Of a stretch of DNA of 64,000 bases, positions 30,415 through 58,335 are shown piece after piece; the stretch's first letter is position 1, and every line of letters begins with the position of its first letter. Where the stretch lies: sequence record NC_070963.1; one strand, written 5' to 3'. The notes below the pieces were generated by a model. It ran no database searches, was not told where the DNA came from, and saw only the letters and a list, made by a program, of their open reading frames with translations. The position numbers and the translations under genes are program-made.

Positions 30415-30520
30415 TCAACCGAGACCTATGGGGAGGTTAAAAAGAAGTCTCTCATCTTACCTTCACTTGAGGGTAGTGAAGGAAATCAGTAAACGAGTAA
30501 TCCCTATACTCATACTTATT
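30415..30520 (+). ncRNA. PhotoRC-II-like 5' leader of psbA
   Basis: accgagacc...gtctctcat, ccttcact/agtgaagg and gagta/tactc stems directly upstream of psbA. Confidence 0.65.
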
Positions 30521-30535
30521 TTCTTTTAAAGTAAA

Positions 30536-32941
<2,406 letters not shown>

Positions 32942-39326: not shown

Positions 39327-42300
39327 ATGGCACTACTTAAGACTAATACTGGTATAGGTACAACCAATCCAACGTCTGCCTTACACGTTATTGGAGATGT
39401 ATTAGTTACTGGTGTAGTTACATCTACGACATTTAACGGAAATATTAACTCTGGGGTTGGCACTATTGTCAATCTAACCAACACACGGTTGACAAGTGGT
39501 GTTGGAACTATTACAACTCTGAACAGTAATACTGCAACAATTCTTGATATTGATAATTTGAGAATGTTGAGTGGTATTGCCACCATCACTCAAATCAACG
39601 CTACAACAATTGTATCTACTAATAATGATTTTGACCATTTAAATGCTAATTTTGGAAATATTGATGTTGGTATTGTCACAGATATTTCTGGAACAAGACT
39701 CAATTATACTGGTGTTGGTACAATTACCACACTCAATAGCACTAATTCTACATTAACCAATCTCAATAATGAGAGATTAACGAGTGGTATTGCAACTGTA
39801 ACTGACCTTATTAATACCAGATTGACAAGTGGTATTGCCACAATTACTGATTTAAATGTAACTAACTCTACATTTAATAATCTTAATGTTATTAATTTAA
39901 ATGCAGTAACTGGTGTCGTTACTGATATATCTGGTTCAAGACTGAATTATACTGGTGTTGGAACAATCACAACACTGAATAGCACTCACACTAATTTAAC
40001 TAATATTAATTCTACTGGAATTAGCACTCTTGCTGATATTAGAGCAGAACGTGTTACTGTTACTGGAATTGTAACCGCAAACTCATTCCGCCCAACGAGT
40101 GGTTATATTCAAGCAGCAGATGGAACTAATTCATTTTACATCTACAACACCACTGGTAATGTAGCGTTCCAAGGAACTATTGGTGTTAATCAAATTAACA
40201 ATGCTGGTGGATACCAGGTTCTTACTTTCAATAATATTGATACAAGACTTACTGGCAATTTAGATATTGCTGGAGTTACAACTTCTTCGGTATTTAATGG
40301 TAATATCTATTCTCTTGGTGTTTCTACTTTTAGAAATGGTCCAGTATTAATTGGAACTGGAACTTCTACAGGGACTGCATTCCAACCACTCCAAGTTACT
40401 GGTGGTGCTTATGTTTCGGATAATCTTGGATTGGGACTTATTTCCCCAACATCAAAACTGGATGTTGTTGGTGATGGTAGATTCACTGGCGTAGTTACTG
40501 CCACTACCTTTAATGGAGATATTAATGCAGGTGTCTCTACACTTGGTGTTGCAACAGCAATCAATCTAACTTCCCAACAACTGATTGTATCTGGACTATC
40601 TACATTTGTTGGAGTCACAACATTCCAAAATGATGTTTATGTTAGTGGAGACCTTTATGTTACTAATGATTTAAAATTAGATGAAATTACTGCTCGTAAT
40701 GTCAATGTAACTGGTGTTGCTACAATCTTTAATCTTGTAGGCACTGCGGCAACAATTACAACTTTTAATAATACAACTTCTACGATTACTGATTTAAGCA
40801 ACACCAGATTAACTTCTGGTATCGCTACAATTACAGATTTAAATGTAACAAACTCCACATTTAATAATCTCAATACAACTAATTTAAATGCAGTAACTGG
40901 AGTTGTTACTACACTTTCAGGTACAAATGTAACTTATACAAACTCAGACTTTATTAATCTAAATGCCAATAATGCGTTTGTTGATGTTGGTATTGTTACT
41001 GATATCTCAGGAACCAGATTAAATTATACTGGTGTTGGCACAATCACCACATTAGATACTGACACTGCAACAATTAATAATCTTTCAAGTGATTACATCA
41101 ATGTTGGTGTTGCTACTGCTACGATTCTGAATAGTGGTATTGGTACGATTACTGATTTAAACAACACAAGACTTGTAAGTGGTATCGCTACAATTACTAC
41201 ACTCAATGCGACGAATGTAGTTTCAACTAATTCTAACTTTACCAATCTAAATGCAAATAATGCTTATATCAATGTTGGTGTTGTTACGGATATTTCAGGA
41301 ACAAGATTAAATTATACTGGTGTTGGCACAATCGCAACATTAGACACTACAAATGCTACGATTGATGATATTTCTAATACCAATATAACTGTAAGTGGTA
41401 TTGCAACAATTCAAAATCTTAGTGTTTTGGGTGACTTTGATGTTTATGATACGACAGCAACTTTCCATAATAATGTCTTTATTTCCGGAAACTTAAGTAT
41501 TGGTGGTACATCATCAATAATTACTGCACAAGACTTAAATATCTTAGACAAAGAAATTACTCTCGGTGTTACAACAAACGCTTTTAATCAAGACGTTTCA
41601 AATGATATCACTGCAAATCACGGTGGTATTTCAATTGCTTCTACTCAAGGTTATCCATTAGTAGACCTTGCCCTTGCTGGATTTAGTTCTTTACCAGCAA
41701 CTTATAAGCAGTTGATGTGGGTTGCTGCCAATTCTTATGGAGTTGGAACCACTGATGCTTGGATGTTTAACTATGCAGTCGGCATTGGTTCTACACAAGT
41801 CCCCAATGATGTAAGACTTGCTGTTGGTGAAGTTCAGATTACTGACCATCAGATTAATGCAATAACTGGAGATTTTGATAGATTAATCAGTGGAATTGCT
41901 ACATTCACTGGTGCTGATATTAGTAATCTTCACTCCAATAATTTATTTGCACAATCTGGAATTATTACAGATTTAAGTGGCACCAGATTAAACTATACTG
42001 GATTTGGAACAATCGCCAATCTTTATAGTACTGATGCTTATATTGATGACATTGCTTCAAATGTTGGATTCGCAACTGCCTTTACTGCCGAAAGATTAAA
42101 TGTATCTGGTGTTGGTACAATTGCCACACTTGATAGCACGACTTCTACGATTACGAATCTGAATGTAACTAACTCAACATTCACAAATGTAAATGTAAAT
42201 AATCTTTATGCTGTTAGTGGTATTGTTACAACACTTACTAGCACTCATTCAACTCTAGAAAATATTAATTCTGCTGGAATCAGCACTCTTAATATTGTAA

Positions 42301-43949
42301 GAACGAATACTATTAATTCTAGTGGTGTTGTAACTGCTCCTACATTTGTTGGAGATTTATTAGGTGTAGCAAATTATGCTCACGTATCTGGTTATTCTAC
42401 CTTTTCTGGATACTCAAACACTTCTGGATTCTCCACATTCTCAGGATACGCAAATGCTGCTGGAGTATCTACCTTCGCAGACTATGCTAACAATGCTGGT
42501 ATAGCAACTTATGCTTGGACTGCAGGCGTCTCCACTTACTCTGGTGTTGCTGGATATTCAACGTTCTCTGGATATTCAGATACCACTGGTTTCTCAACGT
42601 TCTCTGGTTATTCTAACACATCAGGATTCTCAACTTTCTCTGGTTACTCGAACACATCTGGATTCTCAACATTCTCTAATTATTCGGATACTTCAGGGTT
42701 CTCAACCTTCTCTGGTTACGCTAACAATGCTGGCATAGCGACTTATGCCTGGACTGCTGGAGTTAGCACTTATTCTGGTGTTGCTGGAGTATCTACAAGT
42801 GTAGTTGGTGGAAATGTAGACGTATCTCAACTGAATGTAACTGGAATTACAACTCTTGGATTTGCAACAGTTTCTTCATTATATGTCACTGGATTTACTA
42901 CGATTGGTCAAGTTCAAATCAATCCATCAGGAATTATCACTTCTGCAAGTCCAGGTATTGCAACAGTTGTTTATTATGGTGATGGTTCAAATCTGATTGG
43001 TGTTAATGCATTTAATGTTATTAATCAACCATTAACATCAAATACTGTTTATCCAACATTTGCAACAAATGCTGGTGTGGCATCTGTTGGCATTTCTTCC
43101 ACACAAGTTGCTTATATCCCATCATCCAATCGTCTTGGTATTGGAACAACTAATCCAAATTATACTTTAGAAATTGTTGGTAATACTAAAGTTTCTGGTC
43201 TGACTTCTGTTACCAATCTTGAGATTTATGGAACTGTAGGTGCTGGAAATACTCTTGGAAATGATGGGCAATACTTAAAATCAACTGGTATTGGAGTCAC
43301 TTGGTCTTCTTTCCCAACCTTAAGAACGACTGGAATTACCACTGCAATTTATGGTCAGACCTCATTTAGTTTTGCTTATAATGTTGGATTCCTTGATGTT
43401 TATGTAAATGGTGTTAAATTAGCGGGAAGTGAATATACTGCTGTTAATGGTTCAACTGTAACATTACTTTCGCCAACATTTAGTGGAGATGTTGTTGAAT
43501 TTGTTTCTTATAACACATTGAGCACTGGGTCTGGTGGCGGAGGAGGAGGGTCAATATCACTTGATAATCTAACTGATGTTGAAATTACAAATCCTCAAGT
43601 TGGAGAATTACTTGGATTTAATGGAACATATTGGGTTAATGATTATACATTTACAACTACTACTGCAACAGTATCGCAAGTTCCTATTCATACAATTTCT
43701 TCAAATGATTATCGTTCCATTGAGTATATAATTCAAGTTACAAACGGAACTAACTATCATTTGACAAAATTATTAGTTCTTCACGATGGAACCACTGCAT
43801 ATAATACTGAATATGGGACACTTTCAACAGGACCAATATTGGCAACATTTGATACTGATATTAGTGGAGGAGCAATAAGACTTCTTGCAACTCCTTATAG
43901 TTCTTCAACAATAACTTACAAGATTAAGTTTACCGCAATTAAGTCCTGA
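39327..43949 (+). CDS. Long tail fibre protein (1540 aa)
   Basis: Repeated GIVTDISGTRLNYTGVGTI blocks, STFSGYS repeats, DVYVNGVKL module; TAAATA at 39301. Confidence 0.82.
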   Translation: MALLKTNTGIGTTNPTSALHVIGDVLVTGVVTSTTFNGNINSGVGTIVNLTNTRLTSGVGTITTLNSNTATILDIDNLRMLSGIATITQINATTIVSTNNDFDHLNANFGNIDVGIVTDISGTRLNYTGVGTITTLNSTNSTLTNLNNERLTSGIATVTDLINTRLTSGIATITDLNVTNSTFNNLNVINLNAVTGVVTDISGSRLNYTGVGTITTLNSTHTNLTNINSTGISTLADIRAERVTVTGIVTANSFRPTSGYIQAADGTNSFYIYNTTGNVAFQGTIGVNQINNAGGYQVLTFNNIDTRLTGNLDIAGVTTSSVFNGNIYSLGVSTFRNGPVLIGTGTSTGTAFQPLQVTGGAYVSDNLGLGLISPTSKLDVVGDGRFTGVVTATTFNGDINAGVSTLGVATAINLTSQQLIVSGLSTFVGVTTFQNDVYVSGDLYVTNDLKLDEITARNVNVTGVATIFNLVGTAATITTFNNTTSTITDLSNTRLTSGIATITDLNVTNSTFNNLNTTNLNAVTGVVTTLSGTNVTYTNSDFINLNANNAFVDVGIVTDISGTRLNYTGVGTITTLDTDTATINNLSSDYINVGVATATILNSGIGTITDLNNTRLVSGIATITTLNATNVVSTNSNFTNLNANNAYINVGVVTDISGTRLNYTGVGTIATLDTTNATIDDISNTNITVSGIATIQNLSVLGDFDVYDTTATFHNNVFISGNLSIGGTSSIITAQDLNILDKEITLGVTTNAFNQDVSNDITANHGGISIASTQGYPLVDLALAGFSSLPATYKQLMWVAANSYGVGTTDAWMFNYAVGIGSTQVPNDVRLAVGEVQITDHQINAITGDFDRLISGIATFTGADISNLHSNNLFAQSGIITDLSGTRLNYTGFGTIANLYSTDAYIDDIASNVGFATAFTAERLNVSGVGTIATLDSTTSTITNLNVTNSTFTNVNVNNLYAVSGIVTTLTSTHSTLENINSAGISTLNIVRTNTINSSGVVTAPTFVGDLLGVANYAHVSGYSTFSGYSNTSGFSTFSGYANAAGVSTFADYANNAGIATYAWTAGVSTYSGVAGYSTFSGYSDTTGFSTFSGYSNTSGFSTFSGYSNTSGFSTFSNYSDTSGFSTFSGYANNAGIATYAWTAGVSTYSGVAGVSTSVVGGNVDVSQLNVTGITTLGFATVSSLYVTGFTTIGQVQINPSGIITSASPGIATVVYYGDGSNLIGVNAFNVINQPLTSNTVYPTFATNAGVASVGISSTQVAYIPSSNRLGIGTTNPNYTLEIVGNTKVSGLTSVTNLEIYGTVGAGNTLGNDGQYLKSTGIGVTWSSFPTLRTTGITTAIYGQTSFSFAYNVGFLDVYVNGVKLAGSEYTAVNGSTVTLLSPTFSGDVVEFVSYNTLSTGSGGGGGGSISLDNLTDVEITNPQVGELLGFNGTYWVNDYTFTTTTATVSQVPIHTISSNDYRSIEYIIQVTNGTNYHLTKLLVLHDGTTAYNTEYGTLSTGPILATFDTDISGGAIRLLATPYSSSTITYKIKFTAIKS
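42370..42800 (+). repeat. In-frame 36-nt/12-aa degenerate repeats (SGYSxxxGxSTF)
   Basis: Recurrent ttctcaac(g/a/t)ttctctgg(a/t)ta units. Confidence 0.85.
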
Positions 43950-43984: not shown

Positions 43985-45493
43985 GTGGCAAATCAAAATT
44001 TCAAAGTCAAAAACGGACTTGAAGTAGGAACTGGTGTAACTATAAGTGCTGGTATTGTAACTGCTTCTACTTTTAGTGGAAATGCTACCAGTGCAACTTA
44101 CGCTATAACAGCAGGAGTATCAACATATTCTGGAGTATCTGGATTCTCTACGTTCTCTGGATATTCTAATGCTTCTGGAGTATCTACTTTCTCTGGATAC
44201 TCCAATGCTTCTGGAGTCTCAACGTTCTCTGGATATTCTAATGCTTCTGGAGTATCTACTTTCTCTGGATACTCTGATACCACTGGATTCTCTACATTCT
44301 CCGGATATGCAAATGCTTCTGGAGTCTCAACGTTCTCTGGATATTCTGATACTACAGGTTTCTCAACGTTCTCTGGATATTCTAATGCTTCTGGAGTATC
44401 AACTTATTCTGGAGTATCTGGATTCTCTACGTTCTCTGGATACTCTAATACCACTGGATTCTCTACGTTCTCTGGATACTCTGATACTACTGGATTTTCT
44501 ACGTTTTCTGGATACTCTAATCTTTCAGGAATATCGACTTATGCTTCTAATGCTGGAATTGCAACTACAACAACAAATATACCAAACTTAACTGGTGATA
44601 TTACTTCTAACGGAACAGCAACTTCAATTGCTTCTGGAGTTATTGTCGATGATGATATTAATGCTTCTGCCGCTATAGCAGTATCTAAACTAGCAGCATC
44701 AACAATTTCTGGAGTTACTTTAGGAAATAATTTAAGCACTCTTACTTTAAATACATCAGGAACTGGTTTATCAGGTTCCACGACTTATAATGGATCGGGT
44801 TCTGCAACATTTACTGTTGCATCAAACGCTACAAGTTCTAACACTAATTCCACAATTGTTGCAAGGGATGCTTCCGGAAACTTTAGTGCTGGAACTATAA
44901 CTGCAACGACCTTTAGTGGTTCTGGTGCATCTTTAACTTCATTAAATGCTTCTAATCTTTCTTCAGGAACAGTTCCAACAGCAACACTTGCATCCGGAAC
45001 TGCAAACTCGACAACGTATCTAAGAGGAGATCAAACTTGGGCATCCATTAGTGGTGGTGCTACATTATCAAATGACACCACAACAAACGCAACTTACTAT
45101 CCAACATTTAGTTCAACAACTTCGGGGACATATTCAACTGCATATGTTTCAAATACTAAATGCACTTTTAACCCATCAACAGGAACTTTATCAGCAACGG
45201 TATTCACGTCACTTTCTGATAGAACACAAAAAACTGATATAACTCCAATTACAGATGCGATTAAAACTGTAAAACAACTTCAAGGTGTTAAGTATAAGTG
45301 GATAGATAATCATAATAAAGAATCAATCGGTGTGATTGCTCAAGACATTGAAAAGGTATTACCGGAAGTTGTAAATCAAAATCCAGATGGACTTAAGTCA
45401 GTGTCTTATGGAAACATTGTTGGATTATTAATTGAAGCAATTAAAGAACAACAAGTTCGTATTGAAGAATTGGAGAGAAAATTAAATGCCTAA
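43985..45493 (+). CDS. Tail fibre with C-terminal intramolecular chaperone (peptidase S74)
   Basis: SDRTQK...IGVIAQD...YGNIVGLLIEAIKEQQ; GTG start. Confidence 0.88.
   Translation: MANQNFKVKNGLEVGTGVTISAGIVTASTFSGNATSATYAITAGVSTYSGVSGFSTFSGYSNASGVSTFSGYSNASGVSTFSGYSNASGVSTFSGYSDTTGFSTFSGYANASGVSTFSGYSDTTGFSTFSGYSNASGVSTYSGVSGFSTFSGYSNTTGFSTFSGYSDTTGFSTFSGYSNLSGISTYASNAGIATTTTNIPNLTGDITSNGTATSIASGVIVDDDINASAAIAVSKLAASTISGVTLGNNLSTLTLNTSGTGLSGSTTYNGSGSATFTVASNATSSNTNSTIVARDASGNFSAGTITATTFSGSGASLTSLNASNLSSGTVPTATLASGTANSTTYLRGDQTWASISGGATLSNDTTTNATYYPTFSSTTSGTYSTAYVSNTKCTFNPSTGTLSATVFTSLSDRTQKTDITPITDAIKTVKQLQGVKYKWIDNHNKESIGVIAQDIEKVLPEVVNQNPDGLKSVSYGNIVGLLIEAIKEQQVRIEELERKLNA
44085..44565 (+). 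repeat. In-frame 36-nt/12-aa tandem repeats (SGYSNASGVSTF and variants)
   Basis: About a dozen near-identical units. Confidence 0.9.
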
Positions 45494-46520
45494 TCAGTTT
45501 TTATCACCAGAGGGAGATTTAGAAACATTTAATTATTTTGTAACTGAATATTGGTTAATTGACCAGTGGGTTGGTGATACTTTGTGGACTTGGGGTGCTA
45601 ATAGTAGTGGACAACTAGGAAACAATACAACAACTATTAGATCTACTCCAGTCACAACATTCGCTGGTGGAACCAACTGGAAACAAGTTTTTTCTGGACC
45701 TGATCACACAGCAGCAATCAAAACTGATGGAACCTTATGGACTTGGGGTGGTAATTCTTTTGGACAACTAGGAAACAATACGACAACTAATAGTCCTACT
45801 CCAATTACAACATTCTCTGGTGGAACCAACTGGAAACAAGTTTCTTGTGGATTTTATCATACAGCAGCAATCAAAACTGATGGAACCTTATGGACTTGGG
45901 GTTTTAATTCTTATGGACAACTAGGAAACAATACAATAATCAATAGAACCACTCCAGTCACCACATTCGCAGGAGGATTCGACTGGAAACAAGTTTCTTG
46001 TAAAGGTTATACTGTGGCAGCAATTAAAACCGATGGAACCTTATGGACTTGGGGTTGGAATATTTATGGACAAATAGGAGATAATACATCAACCCAAAGA
46101 AATACTCCAGTCACAACACTTGCGGGAGGAACCAACTGGAAACAAGTTTTTTGTGGAGAATTTTATAATCAAGCAATCAAAACTGATGGAACCTTATGGG
46201 GATGGGGTTTTAATGTTTTTGGACAACTAGGAAACAATACAACAACCGATAGATCTACTCCAGTCACGACATTTGCTGGTGGAAACAACTGGAAACAAGT
46301 TTCTGCTGCAGCGTTTCATACAGCAGCAATCAAAACTGATGGAACCCTATGGATTTGGGGTAATAATAATAATGGAAACTTAGGAAACAATACATCAACC
46401 GATAGAATAACTCCAGTCACAACATTTGCAGGAGGAACCAACTGGAAACAAGTTTGTAGCGCCGGTAATAATACAACAGTAGTTACATCAGGAACTGATC
46501 CTACATTCTTCATCTCATAA
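45486..46520 (+). CDS. RCC1/BLIP-II repeat beta-propeller A (6 repeats)
   Basis: 51-aa units LWTWGxNxxGQLG...TNWKQV...[10 protein letters not shown]. Confidence 0.9.
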   Translation: MPNQFLSPEGDLETFNYFVTEYWLIDQWVGDTLWTWGANSSGQLGNNTTTIRSTPVTTFAGGTNWKQVFSGPDHTAAIKTDGTLWTWGGNSFGQLGNNTTTNSPTPITTFSGGTNWKQVSCGFYHTAAIKTDGTLWTWGFNSYGQLGNNTIINRTTPVTTFAGGFDWKQVSCKGYTVAAIKTDGTLWTWGWNIYGQIGDNTSTQRNTPVTTLAGGTNWKQVFCGEFYNQAIKTDGTLWGWGFNVFGQLGNNTTTDRSTPVTTFAGGNNWKQVSAAAFHTAAIKTDGTLWIWGNNNNGNLGNNTSTDRITPVTTFAGGTNWKQVCSAGNNTTVVTSGTDPTFFIS

Positions 46521-46537
46521 ATATTTCAAAAAGTCAT

Positions 46538-47182
46538 ATGTACGCACTTGTTAATGGTCAAGAATTAAGATTAGGACCAATCGCATTCAACTATAGAATG
46601 ATTAATGATGAACTAGAAGAACTTGAAGTTGATTTCAGAGTGACTTCGCAAAGTTATCAATCAGTACCTATTTCAATTACTGAAGACATTAAGATTCTTC
46701 CAGCAAGATATGATAATCCAGAACACGATTCAAAATTTGAATATCTTTCAAATGTCACTCACGAAATTACAGAGACTGAAGTTATTTTTAGACACGATAA
46801 AGTTTCAAAGTCACTTTATCAAATCAAGGACGAATATAAAGCAGGAGTAAAACCAGAGAGACAAAGAAGAGAAAATACTACAATTACCGTAACAATACAA
46901 GATACAGAACTTACTGTATCAACAAGTAGAGAAAGTAGATTAGAATTCATTTCTAAACTATTTGGAAATGATGGACCTTACAACTTTAAGTTTGATAGTG
47001 GTGTTTGGTTAGAAATTACTAAAGTAGATTTAGAATACATAATTTCTCAAATTGATGCAAAAGTTCAGGAAGCATTTGATTGGGAACTTGCAAAACTTGC
47101 AGAGATTGATGCTTGTGTAGATGGTGAAGCAGTTTATGCAGTTGAAATTACTCCACCTCCAGTAGAAAGACCTGTAATTTAA
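46538..47182 (+). CDS. DUF4376-like tail-fibre-assembly protein
   Basis: VKPERQRRE...STSRESR...VQEAFDWE pattern; position among fibre genes. Confidence 0.6.
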
Positions 47183-47183
47183 A

Positions 47184-48401
47184 ATGCCCTATCAACCAAC
47201 TCTTAATTTTAAAACTTCTAGTGGAACTGATTTAGGTAATCTAGGATGGATTACCAAAGAATACTTGATGAGTGTTTATCCACAAATTGCTGGTCAATTA
47301 ATTACTCCGGAATTATGGACTTGGGGTCGTAATTCTTTTGGAGCACTAGGAAACAATACAACCACCAATAGTAACACTCCAATCACTACATTCTCTGGAG
47401 GAGCAAACTGGAAACAAGTTGCTTCTGGAGGTTATTATGTAGCAGCAATCAAAACCGATGGAACCCTATGGACTTGGGGTCGTAATCAATATGCACAACT
47501 AGGAGACAATACAACAACCAATAGATCCACTCCAGTCACAACATTCGCAGGAGGAACTAACTGGAAACAAGTTGCTTGTGGTGCTAATCATACAGTAGCA
47601 ATCAAAACTGATGGAACCTTATGGATTTGGGGTCAAAATACTATTGGACAACTCGGAGACAATACAATAGTCAATAGATCCACTCCAGTCACAACATTCG
47701 CAGGAGGAACCAACTGGAAACAAGTTGCTAGTGGATTACATACAGCAGCAATTAAAACTGATGGTACTTTATGGGTTTGGGGTGACGGTGCTAATGGACA
47801 ATTGGGAAATACTCTTAATAGACCTGTAAGTACTCCAATCACAACATTTGCTGGAGGAACTAATTGGAAACAGATAAGTTGTGGTTATCAACATACAGCA
47901 GCAATCAAGACTGATGGAACTTTATGGACTTGGGGTCAAAATATTTTTAGTTTTTTTCAATTAGGAATCAATGATTCCGTATCTAGAAATACTCCAGTCA
48001 CAACATTTGCGGGAGGAACCAACTGGAAACAAATTGGTTGTGGACGCCAATATACAGCAGCAATCAAGACTGATGGAACCTTATGGACTTGGGGTCAAAA
48101 TAGCAATGGACAACTAGGAGACAATACAACAACTGCAAGATGCACTCCAGTCACAACATTCGCAGGAGGAACCAACTGGAAACAAGTTTCTGGTGGAGGT
48201 TTTCATACAGCAGCAATCAAAACTGATGGAACTTTATGGACTTGGGGTAGTAATGCTTATGGACAATTAGGAAACAATACAACAACCCAAAGAAACGCCC
48301 CAGTCACAACATTTGTAGGAGGAACCAACTGGAAACAAGTTTCTGGTGGAAGTTCTCACACAACAGCAATAAGAACTTCGGACGATTTACAAGGTATCTA
48401 A
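47184..48401 (+). CDS. RCC1/BLIP-II repeat beta-propeller B (7 repeats)
   Basis: Same 51-aa unit. Confidence 0.9.
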
Positions 48402-48437
48402 TATCTGATATAATACTTCTATATCATACTCAAAAAT

Positions 48438-49787
48438 ATGAACCCACTTGAACTCGTTGCAAAGACACTATATTCATTTAAAGAACAGCAATTAACTTTT
48501 GAACTGCTTGATGCTTTTGGAAAACAAGCACAAGTATTTTCACAATATGATGAGATTGCAAAGATTTTTTTTGAACTTCGTAATTTTTCTAAAGCAATTG
48601 AGTATGGTGAAAAGTCTCTTAAATTAGCACAGACAAAAGAAGAAAAATATGTAACAGCAAAGAACCTAATTAATGCTTATAATCAATCAAACTATCCAGA
48701 AAAATCCATAACACAGATTGAAAAACTAAAGAAACAAAATCCTCAAGATACTGAACTTCTTCTAGAAGAAACCTTTGCGTATTCTGCTATTAATCAAAAG
48801 GAAAAGTCGGAGAAACTGCTATTCAATCTTCTTCAACGAAAACTACCAGAAGAGATTGAAAGAAAGGCATATCATAATCTATCAGGTCATTATTTTCGTA
48901 AAGATGACCTTCATACAGGACTTCAACACTTTCTCAAAGCAGGAGAAGTAGAGGCATATAAGAATCAAAAACATCCTGATTTTGAAAAGTGGGATGGAAC
49001 TGTAACTCAAGGAAGAACTATTATTGTAGATAATCAATGTGGTGCTGGTGATGAGGTGATTCACGTTCGGTTTATGAAGAACCTCAAAGACTTGGGAATG
49101 AAACCAATCTGGAGTTCCACTCGTAGAGAACTTGTAGAACTCTTCAAACATAATGGTTATGATGCCGTTTGTATTTGGGACAAACCAGAGTTTCCAAAAG
49201 ATGCCTGTTGGGTTTATGGTCTTGCACTTCCTTATTATCTTAATTTGGAACTCAAAGATATGGGAAGAGAACCTTATCTTTCAACACTTCCAGAGTTTGA
49301 TAAGAAATGGGAATGGATGAAAGAAGATACTGGGTATAAGGTTGGTATGTTCTGGGCGTCTAGTTCTGGATTTGAACAGAACTCTTTCAGGTCAGTAGAA
49401 CTTAAAGATTATATGAGTGTTCTGGGAAACAAAGGATACTCATTGTATTCACTTCAAACTTATACTGACAATAAGGATGCAAATGAGTATCCAGAAATCA
49501 AACAGTCACTGTCAGTCAAGGGTAGAGAGTTTGCTGACACATTCTCTATAATTAAGAACCTTGATTTAGTTGTGACTTCTTGTAGTTTTGTTGCTCACGT
49601 TGCAGCATCTATGGGTAAAGAAGTTTGTGTTTTTGTTCCAATTATGGAATATTATGTTTGGACTTCTTCTACAGGAAAATGTATGTGGTATGGAGATAAC
49701 GTTCATCTCTTCCGTCAAAAGAAACCAAGAACTTGGGATGCACCCATTAAAGAGTTTTGGGAGTTTATGAATGATAGAAGAGTATAA
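48438..49787 (+). CDS. TPR-repeat protein fused to a GT9-like glycosyltransferase domain
   Basis: Helical TPR-like N-terminus; QCGAGDEVIHVRF; DLVVTSCSFVAHVAASMGK. Confidence 0.78.
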   Translation: MNPLELVAKTLYSFKEQQLTFELLDAFGKQAQVFSQYDEIAKIFFELRNFSKAIEYGEKSLKLAQTKEEKYVTAKNLINAYNQSNYPEKSITQIEKLKKQNPQDTELLLEETFAYSAINQKEKSEKLLFNLLQRKLPEEIERKAYHNLSGHYFRKDDLHTGLQHFLKAGEVEAYKNQKHPDFEKWDGTVTQGRTIIVDNQCGAGDEVIHVRFMKNLKDLGMKPIWSSTRRELVELFKHNGYDAVCIWDKPEFPKDACWVYGLALPYYLNLELKDMGREPYLSTLPEFDKKWEWMKEDTGYKVGMFWASSSGFEQNSFRSVELKDYMSVLGNKGYSLYSLQTYTDNKDANEYPEIKQSLSVKGREFADTFSIIKNLDLVVTSCSFVAHVAASMGKEVCVFVPIMEYYVWTSSTGKCMWYGDNVHLFRQKKPRTWDAPIKEFWEFMNDRRV

Positions 49788-50229
49788 TTTATCCTTCCTC
49801 AACCTCAATTCCATCAAGAACAAACTTTTACAAATACAGACCGCTTCTCACGGTCTTGTGACAAAAGGTGTTTCTACTTATAATCACGGAATGCCTGTTC
49901 TAATGTATCCAGAACTGATAGGATTAAAAACGATTATCAAAGAATATATTATAATCTATTGTGAGAAGTATAATATTCCACCACTGGAGTTTATCAATAG
50001 TTGGTTTAATATTTCACAATCAGGAAATAAACTCAAAGCACATAAGCACGAAGAGAGTATTGTTAGTGGAGCATTTTATATTTCTGGAAGAACACCTTTG
50101 ATTTTTCCAGATGTATCAATTCAACCTTATCCGGGTTTATTAGTTATTTTCTCAAGCGATTTGGTTCATTATACAGAAGAAGAAACAGAAGAAAGAATTG
50201 TGATTAGTTTTAATACAGATTACCTATGA
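49771..50229 (+). CDS. 2OG-Fe(II) oxygenase-like protein
   Basis: WFN...HKH...SGAFY...LVIFSSDLVH...RIVISFN. Confidence 0.75.
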   Translation: MIEEYNLSFLNLNSIKNKLLQIQTASHGLVTKGVSTYNHGMPVLMYPELIGLKTIIKEYIIIYCEKYNIPPLEFINSWFNISQSGNKLKAHKHEESIVSGAFYISGRTPLIFPDVSIQPYPGLLVIFSSDLVHYTEEETEERIVISFNTDYL

Positions 50230-50909
50230 GATTTCATACCTTTTATACGAAAAACCTTCCAGAACAATTAATTACAGACCACAAAAGAGTTTGTGATTGT
50301 ATTGGCATTGATGTGACTTATCATATTCAAGATGCAATAGATGATTATGATACTCTTTATACTGCTCACGGAAAGTTTATGACTTCTGTGATGGAGCAAG
50401 AAGAAGTTGCTTGCTTCTTAGATATTGATTGTCTCCCACATAGTAAAGAACTCCTAGAAAAAGCATACAACTGGGCAGTAGAAAATAAATCTTTTGTTGG
50501 CAATGCTCAAAACATTTCTCATACGCAAATGAGAAATCATATCTATGCTGCTGCTTCTTGTTTGATTATCACTAAAGATGCTTGGAATAATTTGGGAAAT
50601 CCAGATTTTACTTGGTTTATGCAAAATGAAATTCAAATAGATACAGCACAAATTCTAACTTTAAGAGCAGACCAGATTGGAATGCCTTATCAATTAATGT
50701 ATCCAGTTGGTTATGATGGTCCAGAAGAATACAAACTTTCTGGATATGGAATGTATGGAACAGGAACTTTATATCCAGCAACTTGGCATTATTTTAGAAT
50801 CAGTAAGTTCAAAAATCAAATACCAGACCTTTGGACAACACGAGTAAATAATATATTAGAAAATCAAAAAATCATTTCAAATCATTCTTCGTGTTTTTAT
50901 GAATTATAA
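50226..50909 (+). CDS. GT-A-like hypothetical protein
   Basis: FLDIDCLP DxD motif. Confidence 0.55.
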   Translation: MRFHTFYTKNLPEQLITDHKRVCDCIGIDVTYHIQDAIDDYDTLYTAHGKFMTSVMEQEEVACFLDIDCLPHSKELLEKAYNWAVENKSFVGNAQNISHTQMRNHIYAAASCLIITKDAWNNLGNPDFTWFMQNEIQIDTAQILTLRADQIGMPYQLMYPVGYDGPEEYKLSGYGMYGTGTLYPATWHYFRISKFKNQIPDLWTTRVNNILENQKIISNHSSCFYEL

Positions 50910-51666
50910 ATTTTTGTTTTTAGTTGGGTCTGCAATTAATCATTTTAAAGAAGAAGACTTGAGTGCTTTTAAGGCAGAAGAGAGATTCCAACAAACACTG
51001 GATACAATTAAATCAATTAAAGATAAAGTTCCTGATGCTTATGTTTTAATCTATGAAGGGTCTGAAACTTCTATCAAACAAGAATACAAAGATAAGTTTA
51101 TAGAACAATCTGATTTATTTCTTGAGTTTGGAAATGACCCCTATATGAAATCTTTGTATGAAAATCTTCATAGAGACCCAGATAAATTTACATTTGTGAA
51201 ATCTATGTTGGAATGTAGATGTTTGCAATTAGTTCTAAATCATATGATGGAGCATAATATCTTTAATGATGCAATAAGAGTATTCAAATTAAGTGGTAGA
51301 TATAAACTGAATGAATACTTTGATATTAATGATTACAAAACTAGGTTCTTGATGAATAAGTATGTAATGAAATATTATGACTATGAAGAAAGATTTGAAG
51401 ATATTGAAAACATCTATGCAACTCTTTATGGATGTAAAGGAAGTATTGTGACTGGTTTGTGGTCATTTGATAGGTTTTTGTTCAATGATATTTTCAATGT
51501 TCTTCAAAGAAGTTTTGAATATATGGAAAGAGCAATTCAATTAACTGCTGGAATTGATATTGAACACTCTTTTTATCATTTTATAGACAGAGATAAGATT
51601 TTAAATGTTCCAGTTCTTGGATTTGATTTAATTAAAGGTATGAATGGAGATAGATATTCATTATGA
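50899..51666 (+). CDS. Hypothetical protein (glycan-island type)
   Basis: ERFQQTLDTIKSI and FKLSGRY motifs; coupled in the operon. Confidence 0.55.
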   Translation: MNYKFLFLVGSAINHFKEEDLSAFKAEERFQQTLDTIKSIKDKVPDAYVLIYEGSETSIKQEYKDKFIEQSDLFLEFGNDPYMKSLYENLHRDPDKFTFVKSMLECRCLQLVLNHMMEHNIFNDAIRVFKLSGRYKLNEYFDINDYKTRFLMNKYVMKYYDYEERFEDIENIYATLYGCKGSIVTGLWSFDRFLFNDIFNVLQRSFEYMERAIQLTAGIDIEHSFYHFIDRDKILNVPVLGFDLIKGMNGDRYSL

Positions 51667-52367
51667 AAATTGCAATCTTTTATCATACCTTTCAGTCAGG
51701 TATGGGTGCTTTTGTCTATCAATCTCAAATTCATAGGTTGTATTGTTCTGGATTAATTGATGCTGCTGATTACATTCATATTGGTGTGAATGGTGATCAA
51801 GAGATGTTTAATGTTCCAGAAAAAGCAAAAGTATCTTACAATACTAACTGGAAAGAAGAAACAGAAACTCTCATAGCACTCAAAAACTTTGCCTATGAAA
51901 ATCCAGATTATAAGATTTTGTATTTTCATATGAAAGGTGCAAGCAAAGAAACTCTTGTTGCAAACTCTTGGAGATTGATGATGGAATATTTTGTGATTGA
52001 CCGGTGGAAAGAGTGTGTAGAACATTTGAATGATTATGACTGCGTAGGGCAGACCTATAAACCTCTTGGACCAACTTTATGGGGTGATGGGACTATGACC
52101 AGTAACGAAGGTATTGGATGCTATTGTGGGAACTTCTGGTGGGCAAATGCGTCTTATATTCAAACACTAGACCATAACTATTTGAATACTAATTATCGTT
52201 TTGATAGAGAGTTCTGGATTGGAACCAATAAGAATGTAAAGGCAAAGTCATTTATGGAATATGCTGATAGTGATTACATTGCCGATAATCATCCCATCCC
52301 ATTAAAGAAAGGTATGAGTGACTATGAACCTTATACACATTACTTCCGTGAGGTAGAATACTTATGA
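51663..52367 (+). CDS. Hypothetical protein, possibly glycosyltransferase-like
   Basis: ILYFHMKG, GNFWWANASYI, REFWIG. Confidence 0.55.
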   Translation: MKIAIFYHTFQSGMGAFVYQSQIHRLYCSGLIDAADYIHIGVNGDQEMFNVPEKAKVSYNTNWKEETETLIALKNFAYENPDYKILYFHMKGASKETLVANSWRLMMEYFVIDRWKECVEHLNDYDCVGQTYKPLGPTLWGDGTMTSNEGIGCYCGNFWWANASYIQTLDHNYLNTNYRFDREFWIGTNKNVKAKSFMEYADSDYIADNHPIPLKKGMSDYEPYTHYFREVEYL

Positions 52368-52732
52368 GAGAGTGTAGAGAATGTACTGCTTGCTGTACTT
52401 GGTTACAAGGGTCTGCTTATGGATATGAGTTTGGTGGTGGAAAGTCTTGTAAGTTCTTATGTGAGAATGGGTGTAGTGTTCATAAGGTACGACCAAAAGT
52501 ATGTGAAGGATATTTCTGTGCTTGGGCACAAGAACTTTTAGCGGAAGAAATGAGACCTGATAAGTGTGGTGTTCTTGCTTCTGTGGAAAATAATGAAAGA
52601 GGACAATATATTAAATTAGTTTCAATTCAAGAAGAAATAAATACAGATATATTAGAATATTTTAAAAATTGGAGTAGAATGATGAATACTCCTGTGATTT
52701 ATTCAAACAATAATTCTTGGGAAGTTCTCTAA
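52364..52732 (+). CDS. Cys-cluster (YkgJ/CxxCxxCC-like) protein
   Basis: CRECTACC...CKFL...CSVH..RP..CEGYFC. Confidence 0.7.
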   Translation: MRECRECTACCTWLQGSAYGYEFGGGKSCKFLCENGCSVHKVRPKVCEGYFCAWAQELLAEEMRPDKCGVLASVENNERGQYIKLVSIQEEINTDILEYFKNWSRMMNTPVIYSNNNSWEVL

Positions 52733-53913
52733 TGCCTACTTTTTACAATTACACCGAGAATGGAGTAGTATATTCTTTTGATGATGTCTTTGTGCCTGCA
52801 GATGCTTTTAGGCAGGGAAACTTATGGGTTTGGGGTCGCAATAATTTTGGACAACTGGGAGACAATACAACAACCAATAGATCCACTCCAGTCACAACAC
52901 TTGCTGGTGGGGCAAACTGGAAACAAGTTGCTTGTGGAGGTAGTCATACTGCAGCAATTAAGACTGATGGAACCATATGGACTTGGGGTCTTAATAGTCA
53001 GGGACAACTAGGAGACAATACAACAACCTGGAGATCAACTCCAGTCACTACATTTGCCGGAGGAACCAACTGGAAACAAGTTGCTTGTGGAAATAATTAT
53101 ACCGCAGCAATCAAAACTGATGGAACCTTATGGACTTGGGGTGTTAATTTTAATGGACAACTAGGAGACAATACAGCAACCCTAAGAAACATTCCAGTCA
53201 CTACATTCGCAGGAGGAACCAACTGGAAACAAGTTGCTTGTGGGCAATTTCAAACATCAGCAATCAAAACTGATGGAACCTTATGGACTTGGGGTCGTAA
53301 TAATTATGGACAACTAGGAGACAATACATCAGGAACCGATAAATTCACTCCAGTCACAACATTCGCCGGAGGAACCAATTGGAAACAACTTGCTAGTGGA
53401 AGTGTTCATATAGCAGCAATTAAAACAGATGGAACCTTATGGATTTGGGGTCGTAATAATTTTGGGCAACTAGGAGACAATACAAAAACAGATAGATCCA
53501 CTCCAGTCACTACATTTGCAGGAGAAGCAAACTGGAAACAAGTTGCTTGTGGAGGTCTTCATACAGCAGCAATCAAAACAGATGGAACTTTATGGGATTG
53601 GGGTTATAATAATCCTGGACAACTAGGAGATAATACAACAACTAGTAGATGCACTCCAGTCACAACATTCGCCGGAGGAACCAACTGGAAACAAGTTGCT
53701 AATGGTAATGGAGTTGGTTTTAACGCAGCAATCAAAACAGATGGAACCTTATGGATTTGGGGTAGTAATGCTTATGGACAAATAGGAGACAACACTTCGG
53801 GGAGCAATAGACTTACACCAGTCACTACATTCGCAGGAGGAACTAATTGGAAACAAGTTGCTGGTGGATATGATCATACACTAGCATTCACATACATAGA
53901 CGATTATCAGTAA
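52732..53913 (+). CDS. RCC1/BLIP-II repeat beta-propeller C (7 repeats)
   Basis: Same 51-aa unit; ATG at 52732 from a TAATG overlap. Confidence 0.9.
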   Translation: MPTFYNYTENGVVYSFDDVFVPADAFRQGNLWVWGRNNFGQLGDNTTTNRSTPVTTLAGGANWKQVACGGSHTAAIKTDGTIWTWGLNSQGQLGDNTTTWRSTPVTTFAGGTNWKQVACGNNYTAAIKTDGTLWTWGVNFNGQLGDNTATLRNIPVTTFAGGTNWKQVACGQFQTSAIKTDGTLWTWGRNNYGQLGDNTSGTDKFTPVTTFAGGTNWKQLASGSVHIAAIKTDGTLWIWGRNNFGQLGDNTKTDRSTPVTTFAGEANWKQVACGGLHTAAIKTDGTLWDWGYNNPGQLGDNTTTSRCTPVTTFAGGTNWKQVANGNGVGFNAAIKTDGTLWIWGSNAYGQIGDNTSGSNRLTPVTTFAGGTNWKQVAGGYDHTLAFTYIDDYQ

Positions 53914-53931
53914 AAACATTATTTCTTAATT

Positions 53932-54714
53932 ATGAAAACATTATTCTTTCTTTCTGGTCTTCCAAGGTCAGGTTCTACTTTACTTGGGTCAATTCTTTCA
54001 CAACATCCAAAACTTCAGGCAACTCCAACATCTCCACTTGCAGATTTGCTCTGTTGGATTGATGAAGGATTCTCTAAAATAGATCTTCAATATACCTATG
54101 ATAAACCACAAGTAGTGTATAATACTTATAATGCAATACTTGAAAACTTCTATAATCACATAGAGAAACCTTGCGTTCTTGATAAACATCGTGGTTGGTG
54201 TAAGAATGTTTCTTCAATTGAAAAGTTTCTTCATCAAAAACCAAAAATCGTAGCAACCAACAGAAGAATTAGTGAAGTTCTTTCTTCTTATATCTTACTC
54301 ATTCAAAGAAACAATGAAGCAGATAATTTTGTAGATGCTCATTTAAGAAGAGAAGGAAAGGAAATCAATACTGACAATCGTATTGAATGTCTTTGGAAGA
54401 ATTATGTTTGCGATCCTTATGAAAGTTTAGTTTATGGTTTGACTAATTACAGAGACAATATTCATCTTGTAGATTATAATGATCTTACACAAAATCCAGA
54501 AAGAGAACTGAAAAAGATTTATGAGTTTCTAGAAATAGAAAATCATTCACACGATTTCTCAAGTATCTTTAATACTTGTGCAGAAGAAAAAGATCACGAA
54601 TGGGGGATTGATAATCTTCATCAAATTCGTCCCAAACTTCAAAGAACTTCACCACCTCCAGAAGAAGTGATTGGTGAAGAAAACACTCAACTTTATGATA
54701 AATTTAATATATGA
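53932..54714 (+). CDS. Sulfotransferase family protein
   Basis: FLSGLPRSGSTLL PAPS-binding motif; LDK; VDYNDL. Confidence 0.85.
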   Translation: MKTLFFLSGLPRSGSTLLGSILSQHPKLQATPTSPLADLLCWIDEGFSKIDLQYTYDKPQVVYNTYNAILENFYNHIEKPCVLDKHRGWCKNVSSIEKFLHQKPKIVATNRRISEVLSSYILLIQRNNEADNFVDAHLRREGKEINTDNRIECLWKNYVCDPYESLVYGLTNYRDNIHLVDYNDLTQNPERELKKIYEFLEIENHSHDFSSIFNTCAEEKDHEWGIDNLHQIRPKLQRTSPPPEEVIGEENTQLYDKFNI

Positions 54715-55397
54715 TTGAAGTATTTTTAAGACATTGCTATACATCCAAAGTTAATCTTTCAGGTGCAAATCGTCCAGACTGGTGGGATAAAGAAAAGGTA
54801 TTTGAAAACTTCAAGAATACACTCAATTCAGAAACTACAAATTACACAATCATCTTTGATGAGTGTTATGGCAAACAAGAAGACACTTTTCTCAAAGATG
54901 AAAATGCAGTAACGATTAACTGTGGTAAAGAGAGTGAAAGTTTCTGTAAGACATTAGATCATATTCTTTCACAAGACTTTGATGATGATACGATCATTTA
55001 CTTTCTTGAAGATGATTATGTACATCGTCCAGAATGGGATAAAGTTCTTATGGATGGATTTACTCTTCCCGTTCAGTATGTAACTTTGTACGATCACGGA
55101 GATAAGTATCAGGAGATGTATAAGGACTTTATGACTAAAGTTCTTGCCACTAAGTATTCTCATTGGATGCCTACTCCTTCCACGACTAATACTTTTGCAG
55201 TGAAGTTTAAAACACTCAAGGAAGATAAAGAAGTTCATAAACATTTCTCAACTGGATATGAACCTTCCGCAGATCACGGTAAATTTTTAGAACTACATAA
55301 GAGAGGAAGAAATTTAATTTCAAGTATTCCCGGTTATTCTACACATTGTCATTCTCAATTTTTATCGCCTTGTATTGATTGGAGCAAATATTTATGA
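54711..55397 (+). CDS. GT-A-like glycosyltransferase
   Basis: IYFLEDDYVH motif. Confidence 0.65.
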   Translation: MIEVFLRHCYTSKVNLSGANRPDWWDKEKVFENFKNTLNSETTNYTIIFDECYGKQEDTFLKDENAVTINCGKESESFCKTLDHILSQDFDDDTIIYFLEDDYVHRPEWDKVLMDGFTLPVQYVTLYDHGDKYQEMYKDFMTKVLATKYSHWMPTPSTTNTFAVKFKTLKEDKEVHKHFSTGYEPSADHGKFLELHKRGRNLISSIPGYSTHCHSQFLSPCIDWSKYL

Positions 55398-56929
55398 AGG
55401 TTACACTATACGCAATTGCAAAGAACGAAGAAAAAAATATTGAAAAGTTTCTCAAGAACGCAGAGAAATTTAATGATGTCGTTGTAGTTGATACTGGAAG
55501 CACTGATGATACAGTTCAACTACTTAAAGATGCTGGTATAAAAGTTTATGAGCATCCACAGACTCGTGCAGAGTTTGATTTTTCAGTCGCAAGAAATCAG
55601 GCACTGTCTTATGTTGAAACTGACTGGGCATTTGCACTTGACTTTAATGAAGATGTAGATGAGTTTCATCCAGAAGGATTTGGGGTAATTGCTGGCGAAT
55701 TCACTACCTTTAATCATTTGAGATTTGATGATAATGGAAAAGATGAACCTGTTCAATCTAATGAAGTTCATCCTCGTTTTCATAGAACTAAGAATTATAC
55801 TTGGGTCAATGCTGTTCATGAAGTTCCAAACTTTATTCCAACAGAAGATTACTCAAATCCAGTCAGCGTAGATACGACAATTAAGATTACTAAAAAAATT
55901 CATAAGTCTGTAGATAAAGAACTCTTTTACTTTTCAATTTGTGAAAGAGAACATAAGAAAGACCCTACCAACTGGTATTGGATTTGGTTCATTTTCAATC
56001 ACTACTTCAATGTTCAGAATACAGAAAAAGCACTTGAGTATGGTCAAGAATTTTTGAATGTATCCAAACCATACTTCGACAGTTTTAGAATACTTACTTT
56101 CATTCGTTGTAGTCAAATACTTTTAAGTATTGGTGATATGCAAAGAGGTATGAATTATGCCTTTCATGCAGTCAGTGAAGGAATGAATATGGGTGGAGTT
56201 CATCTATCACAAGCATTTGGATATTTGTTTGAACTTTCCAAGAGATTGAATAATCCTAATCTTACAATTTTTGCAACTGGTTTTAATCCAGATATGTTGT
56301 CCGCACCAGAAAGAATTGATGCCATTGATAAATTATTCTTGACTAATCTTGAAGACGTTCCTTCCTGTTGGAGAGGGCATCGTAAGTTTGCCGAATGGTT
56401 AGTCACTCAAGTCAAACCAGAAGTCACTGTAGATCTTGGTGTTGATTGGGGATTCTCTACCTTCTGTTTTGGTATGCCTCGCATTGGTCACGTTTATGGT
56501 ATTGATACTTTTGAAGGAGATCAATTCACTGGCGGAAATCACGGTTCTTATGAGTATGTTCTGAACAAACAAGAAAAACTCTTTATGAAAGATAATGTAA
56601 CTTTCATTAAAGGTCTCTTTGATGATGTTGCAAAGACTTGGGATAAGCAGATTGATATCCTTCATATTGATGGAGATCATGCTTATGAATCTGTCAAGCA
56701 TGATTATGAAACTTGGTTTCCATTTTTAAAAGAAAATGGTATAATACTCTTTCACGATACTTGCATTGAGGAACTGAATGGAAATCAATATGGTGTGAAG
56801 AAATTTTTTGAAGAACTTGATTTACCAAAAGTAACATTTACTCATACTTTTGGACTTGGTATTGCTTCTAAAAACAAAGAATTGATTGAGTTCATTAAGA
56901 CTAATTTTGATTTGGATAAACCTTTATGA
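55394..56929 (+). CDS. GT2 - TPR-like - class I SAM methyltransferase fusion
   Basis: AIAKNEE, VDTGSTD, DFSVARN; helical middle; VDLGVDWG...LHIDGDH...LFHD. Confidence 0.85.
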   Translation: MKVTLYAIAKNEEKNIEKFLKNAEKFNDVVVVDTGSTDDTVQLLKDAGIKVYEHPQTRAEFDFSVARNQALSYVETDWAFALDFNEDVDEFHPEGFGVIAGEFTTFNHLRFDDNGKDEPVQSNEVHPRFHRTKNYTWVNAVHEVPNFIPTEDYSNPVSVDTTIKITKKIHKSVDKELFYFSICEREHKKDPTNWYWIWFIFNHYFNVQNTEKALEYGQEFLNVSKPYFDSFRILTFIRCSQILLSIGDMQRGMNYAFHAVSEGMNMGGVHLSQAFGYLFELSKRLNNPNLTIFATGFNPDMLSAPERIDAIDKLFLTNLEDVPSCWRGHRKFAEWLVTQVKPEVTVDLGVDWGFSTFCFGMPRIGHVYGIDTFEGDQFTGGNHGSYEYVLNKQEKLFMKDNVTFIKGLFDDVAKTWDKQIDILHIDGDHAYESVKHDYETWFPFLKENGIILFHDTCIEELNGNQYGVKKFFEELDLPKVTFTHTFGLGIASKNKELIEFIKTNFDLDKPL

Positions 56930-57282: not shown

Positions 57283-57284
57283 TT

Positions 57285-58316: not shown

Positions 58317-58335
58317 CTACAAACTATAATGTCTG

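Follow-up and report, generated by a model that had tools for sequence, protein, structure and literature searches.

The stretch of DNA analysed here, referred to as the window, comprises 64,000 nucleotides (nt) and is 100% identical to the genome of Synechococcus phage S-SRM01 (NC_070963 / MW015081), a freshwater T4-like cyanomyovirus (Kyanoviridae, Serangoonvirus) of 240,842 bp, which originates from a reservoir in Singapore. The window represents the last 64 kb of the record, base 1 being record base 176,843, and extends to the end of the circular record. Three of its genes encode propeller proteins of the RCC1 type, each consisting of a short N-terminal leader and six or seven repeats (blades). 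The three propeller genes are under concerted evolution with respect to the DNA of the blade framework, and a small set of positions in each blade evolves fast. Judged from gene context and from precedent in other phages, the most likely role of the three propellers would be that of virion-borne accessory binding modules. The genes and their repeat arrays are located as follows (evidence for the genes in brackets).

45486..46520, plus strand: RCC1 propeller gene 1 (gp335, 344 amino acids), a leader of 33 amino acids and six blades (Pfam; hidden Markov model (HMM) of the blade; AlphaFold)
45585..46502, plus strand: array of gene 1, six blade units of 153 nt
47184..48401, plus strand: RCC1 propeller gene 2 (gp337, 405 amino acids), a leader of 44 amino acids and seven blades (Pfam; blade HMM)
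47316..48389, plus strand: array of gene 2, seven blade units of 150–159 nt
52732..53913, plus strand: RCC1 propeller gene 3 (gp344, 393 amino acids from ATG), a leader of 31 amino acids and seven blades (Pfam; AlphaFold)
52825..53904, plus strand: array of gene 3, seven blade units of 153–159 nt

An earlier note on this DNA, made from the letters and their reading frames, had counted three RCC1 propellers with 20 repeats, and the same number (6 + 7 + 7 units) was obtained by motif counting and with the blade HMM. Pfam RCC1 and RCC1-like domain models matched all three proteins (E values of 1e-64 to 1e-96). The RCC1 model (PF00415) covered 6–7 stretches per protein (5e-64 to 2e-77), and the WD40_RLD model (PF25390) reached 226–322 bits compared to a cut-off of 150. 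Tandem Repeats Finder identified arrays with a period of 153 nt and 76–81% matches. No RCC1 blades were found beyond the three genes, neither in the rest of the window nor in the rest of the genome. All three proteins start with Met-Pro. The leaders differ between the genes, as was noted before, with 8–11 identical residues out of 31–33. For gene 3, the ATG at 52732 given in RefSeq is likely to be the start rather than the TTG at 52717 opening the frame (398 amino acids). Gene 1 contains six blades in S-SRM01, while its orthologue has seven in every related contig (compared were L002:5695-6882, L005:2878-4083, L020:4106-5311 and L008:9965-11143). A blade could have been lost by unequal recombination, or a repeat could have been collapsed in the assembly.

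The DNA of the blade framework is nearly uniform within and between the genes, as had been proposed, and this uniformity exceeds what codon bias would give. The frequency with which the same synonymous codon occupies the same column was compared to that obtained after shuffling codons among columns of the same amino acid. It was 0.70 for threonine (0.34 shuffled), 0.86 for glycine (0.59 shuffled) and 1.00 for valine (0.49 shuffled; p < 0.0002 for all three), and a same-codon chance of approximately 0.4 is expected from the general codon usage of the window. Clustering of the repeats by gene and position was not found. Nucleotide identity was 77.2% within genes compared to 77.0% between genes (label permutation, p 0.25), and blades of the same index in genes 2 and 3 showed no extra closeness, with the exception of a weak signal for the closing blade.

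Related loci (30) were identified in IMG/VR, of which L002, L003, L004, L005 and L020 are closest to S-SRM01, and L008, L012 and L013 are more distant. Most of them share the order fibre, RCC1, DUF4376, RCC1, TPR (tetratricopeptide repeat) protein, 2-oxoglutarate (2OG) oxygenase, hypothetical proteins, RCC1 and sulfotransferase; in L003, L012 and L013 this order is only partly retained. The three-gene layout is older than the splits among S-SRM01 and these relatives. Framework synonymous divergence (pS) was 0.29 among the 20 S-SRM01 blades and 0.29–0.33 between these and the blades of L020, L002 and L005. In the comparison with L008 it was 0.47 between the phages, 0.29 within S-SRM01 and 0.36 within L008, and it rose to 0.71 in the comparison with L013. 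For flanking single-copy orthologues, a protein identity of 85–95% and a pS of 0.3–0.55 were determined with close relatives, and a pS of 0.6–0.8 with L008 and L013. The blade columns are able to diverge, since the same columns reach a pS of 0.71 towards L013. Codon bias was rejected as the cause of the framework likeness by the column-specific codon identity together with the saturation seen towards distant relatives.

The earlier note had proposed that the propellers are diversified by blade shuffling or gene conversion. This proposal is supported by the lack of clustering by gene, by the homogenisation at the DNA level and by tracts in related phages; what had to be changed is the scale, which is that of the phage clade and not of the single genome. 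The blade pool is common to the nearest genomes and not private to one of them. A tract of 42 nt, given as evidence, is indeed exactly identical at 47502 and 52858, but it is not longer than expected when the order of polymorphic sites is permuted (global p of approximately 0.2) and was therefore dropped as stand-alone evidence for conversion. An identical tract of 46 nt is present within gene 2. In contrast to S-SRM01, the run-length permutation was significant for L020 (p 0.003, including pairs from different genes) and L005 (p 0.04), and for L008 the observed run was reached in 0 of 400 permutations (p < 0.0025). In the relatives, exact tracts of 94–105 nt join blades differing elsewhere, and identical seven-residue A-B loops are paired with different C-D loops in different genes. 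A sum-of-squares run statistic (p 0.003) was set aside, being confounded by clustered variable sites. Between the 99.9% identical contigs L015 and L018, four clustered third-position changes were found within approximately 70 nt of one blade (L015:2574-2643). This pattern fits a short conversion tract; it could also be an assembly chimera. S-SRM01 encodes a T4-type set of recombination proteins (UvsX, UvsY, UvsW and gp46/47-like). Homologous recombination and gene conversion between repeats would keep the scaffold DNA alike across genes and nearest phages, and the same recombination would move segments smaller than a blade between genes and alter the numbers of blades and propellers.

Variation was mapped per column over the 20 codon-aligned units. 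It is concentrated where the earlier note had placed it, in unit codons 5, 7 and 8 (G-x-N-x-x-G, directly behind strand C), 16, 18 and 20 (around the Arg preceding T-P) and 36–43 (after K-Q-V). Approximately 13 of the 51 positions per blade are hypervariable. The proposed loop composition was in part recovered. The loops are rich in Ser, Asn, Phe and Tyr, while Gly and Arg are unremarkable: the seven most variable columns contain 19% N, 17% S, 11% F, 9% Y, 7% Q, 6% G and 4% R, with N, S, F and Y amounting to 56% of the residues. At the variable columns of the S-SRM01 blades, the ratio of nonsynonymous to synonymous substitutions (dN/dS) was 2.8 (Nei-Gojobori; dN approximately 0.86, dS 0.31), compared to a dN of 0.08 and a dS of approximately 0.37 in the framework; both sets of values were equal within and between genes. 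When the variable columns were picked from the relatives only, in order to avoid circularity, dN(variable)/dS(all) in the S-SRM01 blades was 2.0 (bootstrap 1.67–2.33), and the rest of the blade gave 0.32. Column entropies of S-SRM01 and the relatives were closely correlated (r = 0.91). The identity of positional orthologues in the variable columns was 0.15–0.33, compared to a background of 0.24, in phages whose flanking proteins are 85–95% identical. The loops are thus fully turned over, since positional orthologues are at background identity in these columns. Diversifying selection would exchange the residues of the loops at a rate far above that of change at neutral sites.

Only this general pattern, localised hypervariability on a conserved scaffold, fits a programmed mutator, e.g. 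a diversity-generating retroelement (DGR) or another form of targeted hypermutation, as the source of loop diversity, and such an origin is extremely improbable. No reverse transcriptase is annotated in the 240.8-kb genome, and no RCC1-like sequence that might represent the template repeat of a retroelement was found outside the three genes. The adenine share was 33% at variable codons compared to 36% at the remaining ones, and variation affects each of the three codon positions. It extends over the three genes with their 20 blades and is not confined to one pair of template and variable repeat. Furthermore, contigs from different samples with 99.8–100% identity showed 33 differences in 16 kb, none of which is located in the RCC1 genes (30% of the length). 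The diversity is a result of selection plus recombination, not of programmed hypermutation.

The AlphaFold model of the gene 3 product (predicted local distance difference test (pLDDT) 91.2, predicted template modelling score (pTM) 0.88) contains 28 blade strands in the order C, D, A, B per sequence repeat, and the first C and D strands together with the last A and B strands remain to form the closing blade. In a Foldseek comparison, this model resembled the RCC1-like domains of UVR8, HERC2, RPGR and RCC1 with template modelling (TM) scores of 0.79–0.85. The model of the gene 1 product has 24 strands and a pLDDT of 78 and overlays six of the seven UVR8 blades. In the strand map of the gene 3 model, the variable columns occupy the two ends of the long C-D loop as well as the A-B loop and its flanks, and the B-C and D-A loops are conserved. 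In the propeller topology, A-B and C-D loops are located on one face. According to a phmmer alignment, the variable columns correspond to D96, D107 and the W-R of the G-W-R-H-T motif of UVR8, all of which are residues of the UVR8 interaction face. The variable positions probably share one face, as deduced from propeller topology and the UVR8 alignment, and those of all blades would together form one large binding face.

The fold comparison also bears on functions suggested by the name of the family, namely condensation of chromosomes or DNA, guanine-nucleotide exchange as in RCC1, or UV-B sensing as in UVR8. RefSeq and PHROG label the proteins 'regulator of chromosome condensation', the best solved-structure match is UVR8 (E 4e-51), the host is a phototroph, and the authors describing phage phAPEC6 speculated on an ordering of DNA by its RCC1 proteins (PMC7247149). 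A role of this kind is nevertheless very improbable, because the names are inherited from the repeat family and not from a tested function, and a hypervariable surface is unexpected for a housekeeping function related to DNA or nucleotides. In addition, Ran, the partner of RCC1, is a eukaryotic protein. A UVR8-like photoreception was rejected as well, since the chromophore positions W and R of the UVR8 G-W-R-H-T motifs align with those two columns of the A-B loop that vary most and are not conserved; 9–10 different residues occur at the aligned positions among the 20 blades, and the tryptophan chromophore motif is absent from the S-SRM01 proteins.

The propeller genes are located in a co-directional block, of which the following further members were assigned (evidence in brackets).

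39327..43949, plus strand: gp333, baseplate-wedge-like structural protein of 1540 amino acids, first of the block (phrog_1469 baseplate wedge subunit, E 6e-12; RefSeq)
43985..45493, plus strand: gp334, fibre of 502 amino acids with a C-terminal self-cleaving chaperone domain (Peptidase_S74, residues 411–463, E 6e-16; many tail-fibre PHROGs)
46538..47182, plus strand: gp336, 214 amino acids, DUF4376 domain (Pfam, E 1.6e-5, 25.7 bits compared to a cut-off of 25)
48438..52732, plus strand: six genes between propellers 2 and 3, syntenic in relatives, encoding a TPR protein, a 2OG-Fe(II) oxygenase, three hypothetical proteins and the Cys-rich gp343
53932..54714, plus strand: sulfotransferase gene heading the downstream block of glycan enzymes (RefSeq; phrog_27463)

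The location given in the earlier note, behind a chaperoned fibre and around a DUF4376 gene, is thus found again, with gp334 and its Peptidase_S74 domain upstream and gp336 between propellers 1 and 2, although the DUF4376 match is marginal. The propeller genes follow baseplate-wedge genes and the S74-chaperoned fibre and are translationally coupled to their neighbours: the ATG of gene 1 overlaps the end of the fibre gene gp334 by 8 nt, that of gene 2 lies one base past the stop of gp336, and that of gene 3 overlaps the stop of gp343 by one base. For gp336, a weak match to a tail-fibre PHROG was obtained (E 2.6e-4); the protein is syntenic in relatives at 66–80% identity and is possibly related to fibre assembly. 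The sulfotransferase shows 88–96% identity in close relatives. NCBIfam and PDB searches gave nothing informative for the TPR protein, the DUF4376 protein and other neighbours, and scans for promoters and terminators revealed no excess over the shuffled expectation.

Several observations on the surroundings were made in addition. The shaft of gp334 is encoded by tandem repeats of 36 nt (12 amino acids) at 44138-44540, 5' of the S74 chaperone domain; a tandem-repeat search identified approximately 11 copies with 76–79% matches, rich in Ser, Gly, Thr, Phe and Tyr. In the circular record, the fibre block continues across the origin into further fibre genes. Past the origin, a dozen further genes carry the annotation tail fibre or endosialidase chaperone (L032:22-10584), and the fibre set of S-SRM01 seems unusually large. 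The block encoding the TPR protein, 2OG-Fe(II) oxygenase, sulfotransferase, glycosyltransferase and epimerase (window 48438-59445) is flanked on both sides by fibre genes. Further upstream, the psbA region (window 30399-32851) contains a PhotoRC-II RNA motif (30399-30496), two annotated D1 fragments with a homing-endonuclease gene between them and two group I introns found with Rfam (32144-32397 and 32607-32851), so that psbA appears to be interrupted more than once, with RefSeq annotating only part of this. Rfam matches were also obtained for the wcaG RNA motif (101 bits; window 14585-14682) and, next to the cluster of tRNA genes, for the abiF RNA (7235-7271).

Proteins related to the propellers are virion components in other phages. 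All S-SRM01 propellers matched phrog_4219 with E values of 1e-48 or better, and three consecutive members of this PHROG were detected by mass spectrometry in purified virions of the E. coli phage W70 (PMC11370258). Likewise, gp1 of phage GAP32, also an RCC1 protein, was detected by mass spectrometry (PMC5259590). In Pseudomonas phage PollyC, an RCC1 propeller is part of a T7-type tail-fibre gene, and in cyanophage BUCT-ZZ01 a fibre gene and a chaperone-like gene are followed by a double RCC1 gene. The leaders of the S-SRM01 proteins are gene-specific and conserved between phages: that of gene 1 shows 94% identity in close relatives and 81% in L008, compared to approximately 70% for the propellers, and that of gene 3 up to 97% identity in relatives. 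Taken together, gene context, gene-specific leaders and the precedent in other phages suggest a location on the virion, docking via the leader and binding to the host surface. The interchangeable adhesin heads of the earlier note would thus remain putative. On balance, we consider it probable, with some reservation, that a leader joined to a homogenised RCC1 propeller with a fast-evolving face constitutes a virion-borne accessory binding module, diversified without a programmed mutator. The conserved leader would serve for docking on the apparatus of fibre or baseplate; a variable structure on the Synechococcus surface would be recognised by the variable face.

The same selection pattern might arise inside the host cell. 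The propellers would then act during infection, with the variable face binding a fast-evolving host protein (a defence or regulatory factor) in an intracellular arms race. A dN/dS above 1 on one face and a full turnover between orthologues fit any antagonistic protein-protein interface, most RCC1-like domains with solved structures serve as platforms for protein binding (UVR8-COP1, HERC2, RPGR), and the leaders contain no known structural attachment domain. However, the genes lie inside the baseplate and fibre block and are coupled to the fibre gene and the DUF4376 gene in a layout conserved across related phages. This location, the virion-associated RCC1 proteins of the same PHROG and the propeller in the PollyC tail-fibre gene render an intracellular role unlikely, if still worth considering.

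Enzyme genes lie on both sides of gene 3, and synteny in relatives extends to the entire block (TPR protein, 2OG-Fe(II) oxygenase, sulfotransferase, glycosyltransferase and epimerase). The propellers might accordingly be carbohydrate-binding or scaffolding partners of glycan enzymes, which remodel the host envelope or decorate phage proteins. Loops in which N, S, F and Y are frequent, as they are in sugar-binding sites, and one metagenomic homologue (P0092) fused to a concanavalin-like lectin domain are in line with such a partnership. It is rendered quite improbable by the conservation of the enzymes (85–96%) in phages in which the variable sites of the propellers are fully turned over, which would not be expected for a fixed enzyme partnership. 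Moreover, genes 1 and 2 attach to the fibre end of the block and not to the enzymes, BUCT-ZZ01 has a propeller gene without the enzyme block, and the family matches of the enzymes give no informative link to the propellers. The propellers show no clear enrichment in N-x-S/T sequons. The idea that the neighbouring transferases act on N-glycosylation sequons was dropped, since in two of the three proteins the numbers of sequons are close to those expected after shuffling.

The interpretation of the propellers as virion-borne binding modules has to be weighed against a number of observations which speak against it. The blades of S-SRM01 are as close to those of its nearest relatives as to each other, and homogenisation inside S-SRM01 since the split from these relatives is therefore not demonstrated. 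The run-length permutation gave no significant conversion tracts in S-SRM01 (p 0.17–0.21), and some of the mosaics in the relatives could be assembly chimeras, because the contigs of this repeat family were assembled from short metagenomic reads. Exchange between phages or codon selection could account for part of the low synonymous divergence. The window contains seven phage tRNA genes (7277-13736; Arg-TCT, Asn-GTT, Thr-TGT, Gly-TCC, Val-TAC, Ser-TGA and Pro-TGG), and four of the tRNAs read the commonest framework codons AGA, ACA, GGA and CCA. A contribution of translational selection to the uniform codons of the framework is therefore possible. In the leaders, neither a recognised fibre or baseplate attachment domain nor a match to any other open reading frame (ORF) of the genome was found. 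The interleaving of the propeller genes with glycan-enzyme genes is compatible with a non-structural role. The placement of the variable positions on one face is based on topology and alignment, not on coordinates. With its six blades and a less confident model, gene 1 may be impaired, or may reflect an assembly collapse. Finally, the genome paper on S-SRM01 does not mention the three RCC1 genes and reports no virion proteomics.

RCC1 proteins of other large myoviruses (W70 gp237-239, GAP32 gp1 of the Rak2-like phages, and the multicopy proteins of 121Q, PBECO4 and phAPEC6) are, like those of S-SRM01, stand-alone propellers of approximately 40 kDa, and their genes often occur as several tandem paralogues. 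W70 gp237-239 belong to the same PHROG (phrog_4219) as the S-SRM01 proteins; the W70 and GAP32 proteins were seen in virions. The RCC1 proteins of enterobacterial phages showed 18–20% identity to those of S-SRM01 in the structure search and were not among the tblastn matches. The accounts of the large-myovirus proteins consulted for this study describe neither a homogenised DNA framework nor a hypervariable face or concerted evolution. In PollyC gp38 and the tail fibre of Littlefix, an RCC1-like propeller forms the distal part of the host-recognition fibre. It is fused to the N-terminal domain of the fibre (for PollyC, the match to the T7 tail domain is just under the Pfam threshold, 23.1 compared to 25.2 bits), while the S-SRM01 propellers are separate proteins with a leader of only 31–44 amino acids, and the identity between these and the S-SRM01 proteins is approximately 29% or less.

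In the gp38/gp37 adhesins of T-even phages, conserved glycine-rich motifs serve as framework and as recombination sites, and hypervariable segments determine receptor specificity. Homologous recombination between related phages reshuffles these segments. The principle is that considered here as well, without a relation in sequence or fold (no Pfam or PDB match to gp38). Unlike in gp38, the framework in S-SRM01 is a propeller of 7 x 51 residues in three genes, and donors and acceptors are present within one genome because the framework is repeated in three genes. UVR8, HERC2, RPGR and RCC1 share the seven-bladed fold, and positions of the interaction face of UVR8 correspond to the variable columns of S-SRM01; these proteins, however, are eukaryotic and single-copy, with conserved interaction residues and without homogenisation of the repeats at the DNA level. 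A near-consensus framework with few variable positions per repeat, all on one face, is also a property of the variable lymphocyte receptors of lampreys and of designed consensus repeat proteins. Receptors of the lamprey type are reshuffled by gene conversion between repeat units, and the likeness to S-SRM01 is conceptual. In contrast to lampreys, S-SRM01 shows no somatic or programmed assembly, the time scale is an evolutionary one, and silent donor cassettes were not found outside the three genes. DGR targets such as Mtd of the Bordetella phage likewise combine localised hypervariability with a stable scaffold and a location near tail-fibre genes. Different from Mtd, the S-SRM01 proteins have another fold and are not accompanied by an annotated reverse transcriptase, a template repeat, an adenine pattern or variation at the strain level.

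The number of propellers per locus is fluid, since slots of the related loci hold fused ORFs or paired genes. The second or third slot in relatives was found to contain fused ORFs of 14, 21 or 27 blades or two adjacent propeller genes (e.g. L002:13045-16509, L007:1647-5945, L008:11819-14212 and L005:10267-12634). The fused ORFs encode two to four propellers per protein; the paired genes were seen in the third slot of some loci. In a search of 5.8 billion proteins, at least 7,970 of the 8,000 scored candidates matched with E values of 1e-20 or lower, which attests to the size of the family. The best identity among these candidates was approximately 75%, which is the level between the S-SRM01 paralogues. 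For proteins from cellular genomes, the identity was at most 53%, and cyanobacteria were absent from the matches. A recent capture from the host is therefore unsupported. A more far-reaching possibility, which we put forward tentatively and regard as rather doubtful, is that S-SRM01-like freshwater cyanophages maintain a library of binders on a repeat scaffold. A pool of blade DNA would be shared across genes and co-circulating genomes, and recombination at stretches of framework homology would move loop-bearing segments, blades and whole propellers among one to four or more slots, resulting in several virion faces which can be re-assorted.

It was already known that phages encode RCC1-like proteins, some of which are virion-associated, and that hypervariable recognition parts can be reshuffled at conserved motifs, as in T-even gp38. 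New in this study are the homogenised propeller DNA over 20 blades, three genes and several genomes and the approximately 13 fast positions per blade, probably on one face; this combination was not found described for cyanophages. RCC1-like genes are common in large phages, where they are labelled 'chromosome condensation' by name and have remained uncharacterised, and thousands of natural variants of the family are present in freshwater metagenomes. The locus represents a clean case of concerted evolution and diversifying selection acting on one unit of 153 nt. Host recognition by cyanophages is poorly understood, and their host range shapes the mortality of cyanobacteria in lakes and oceans. 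If located on the virion, the propellers would constitute a new, modular class of cyanophage recognition parts; they would also exemplify, in nature, a consensus repeat framework in which the binding positions vary. If the interpretation as a binder library is true, they would be the phage equivalent of receptor diversification by cassettes, a mode of host-recognition evolution undescribed for cyanophages.

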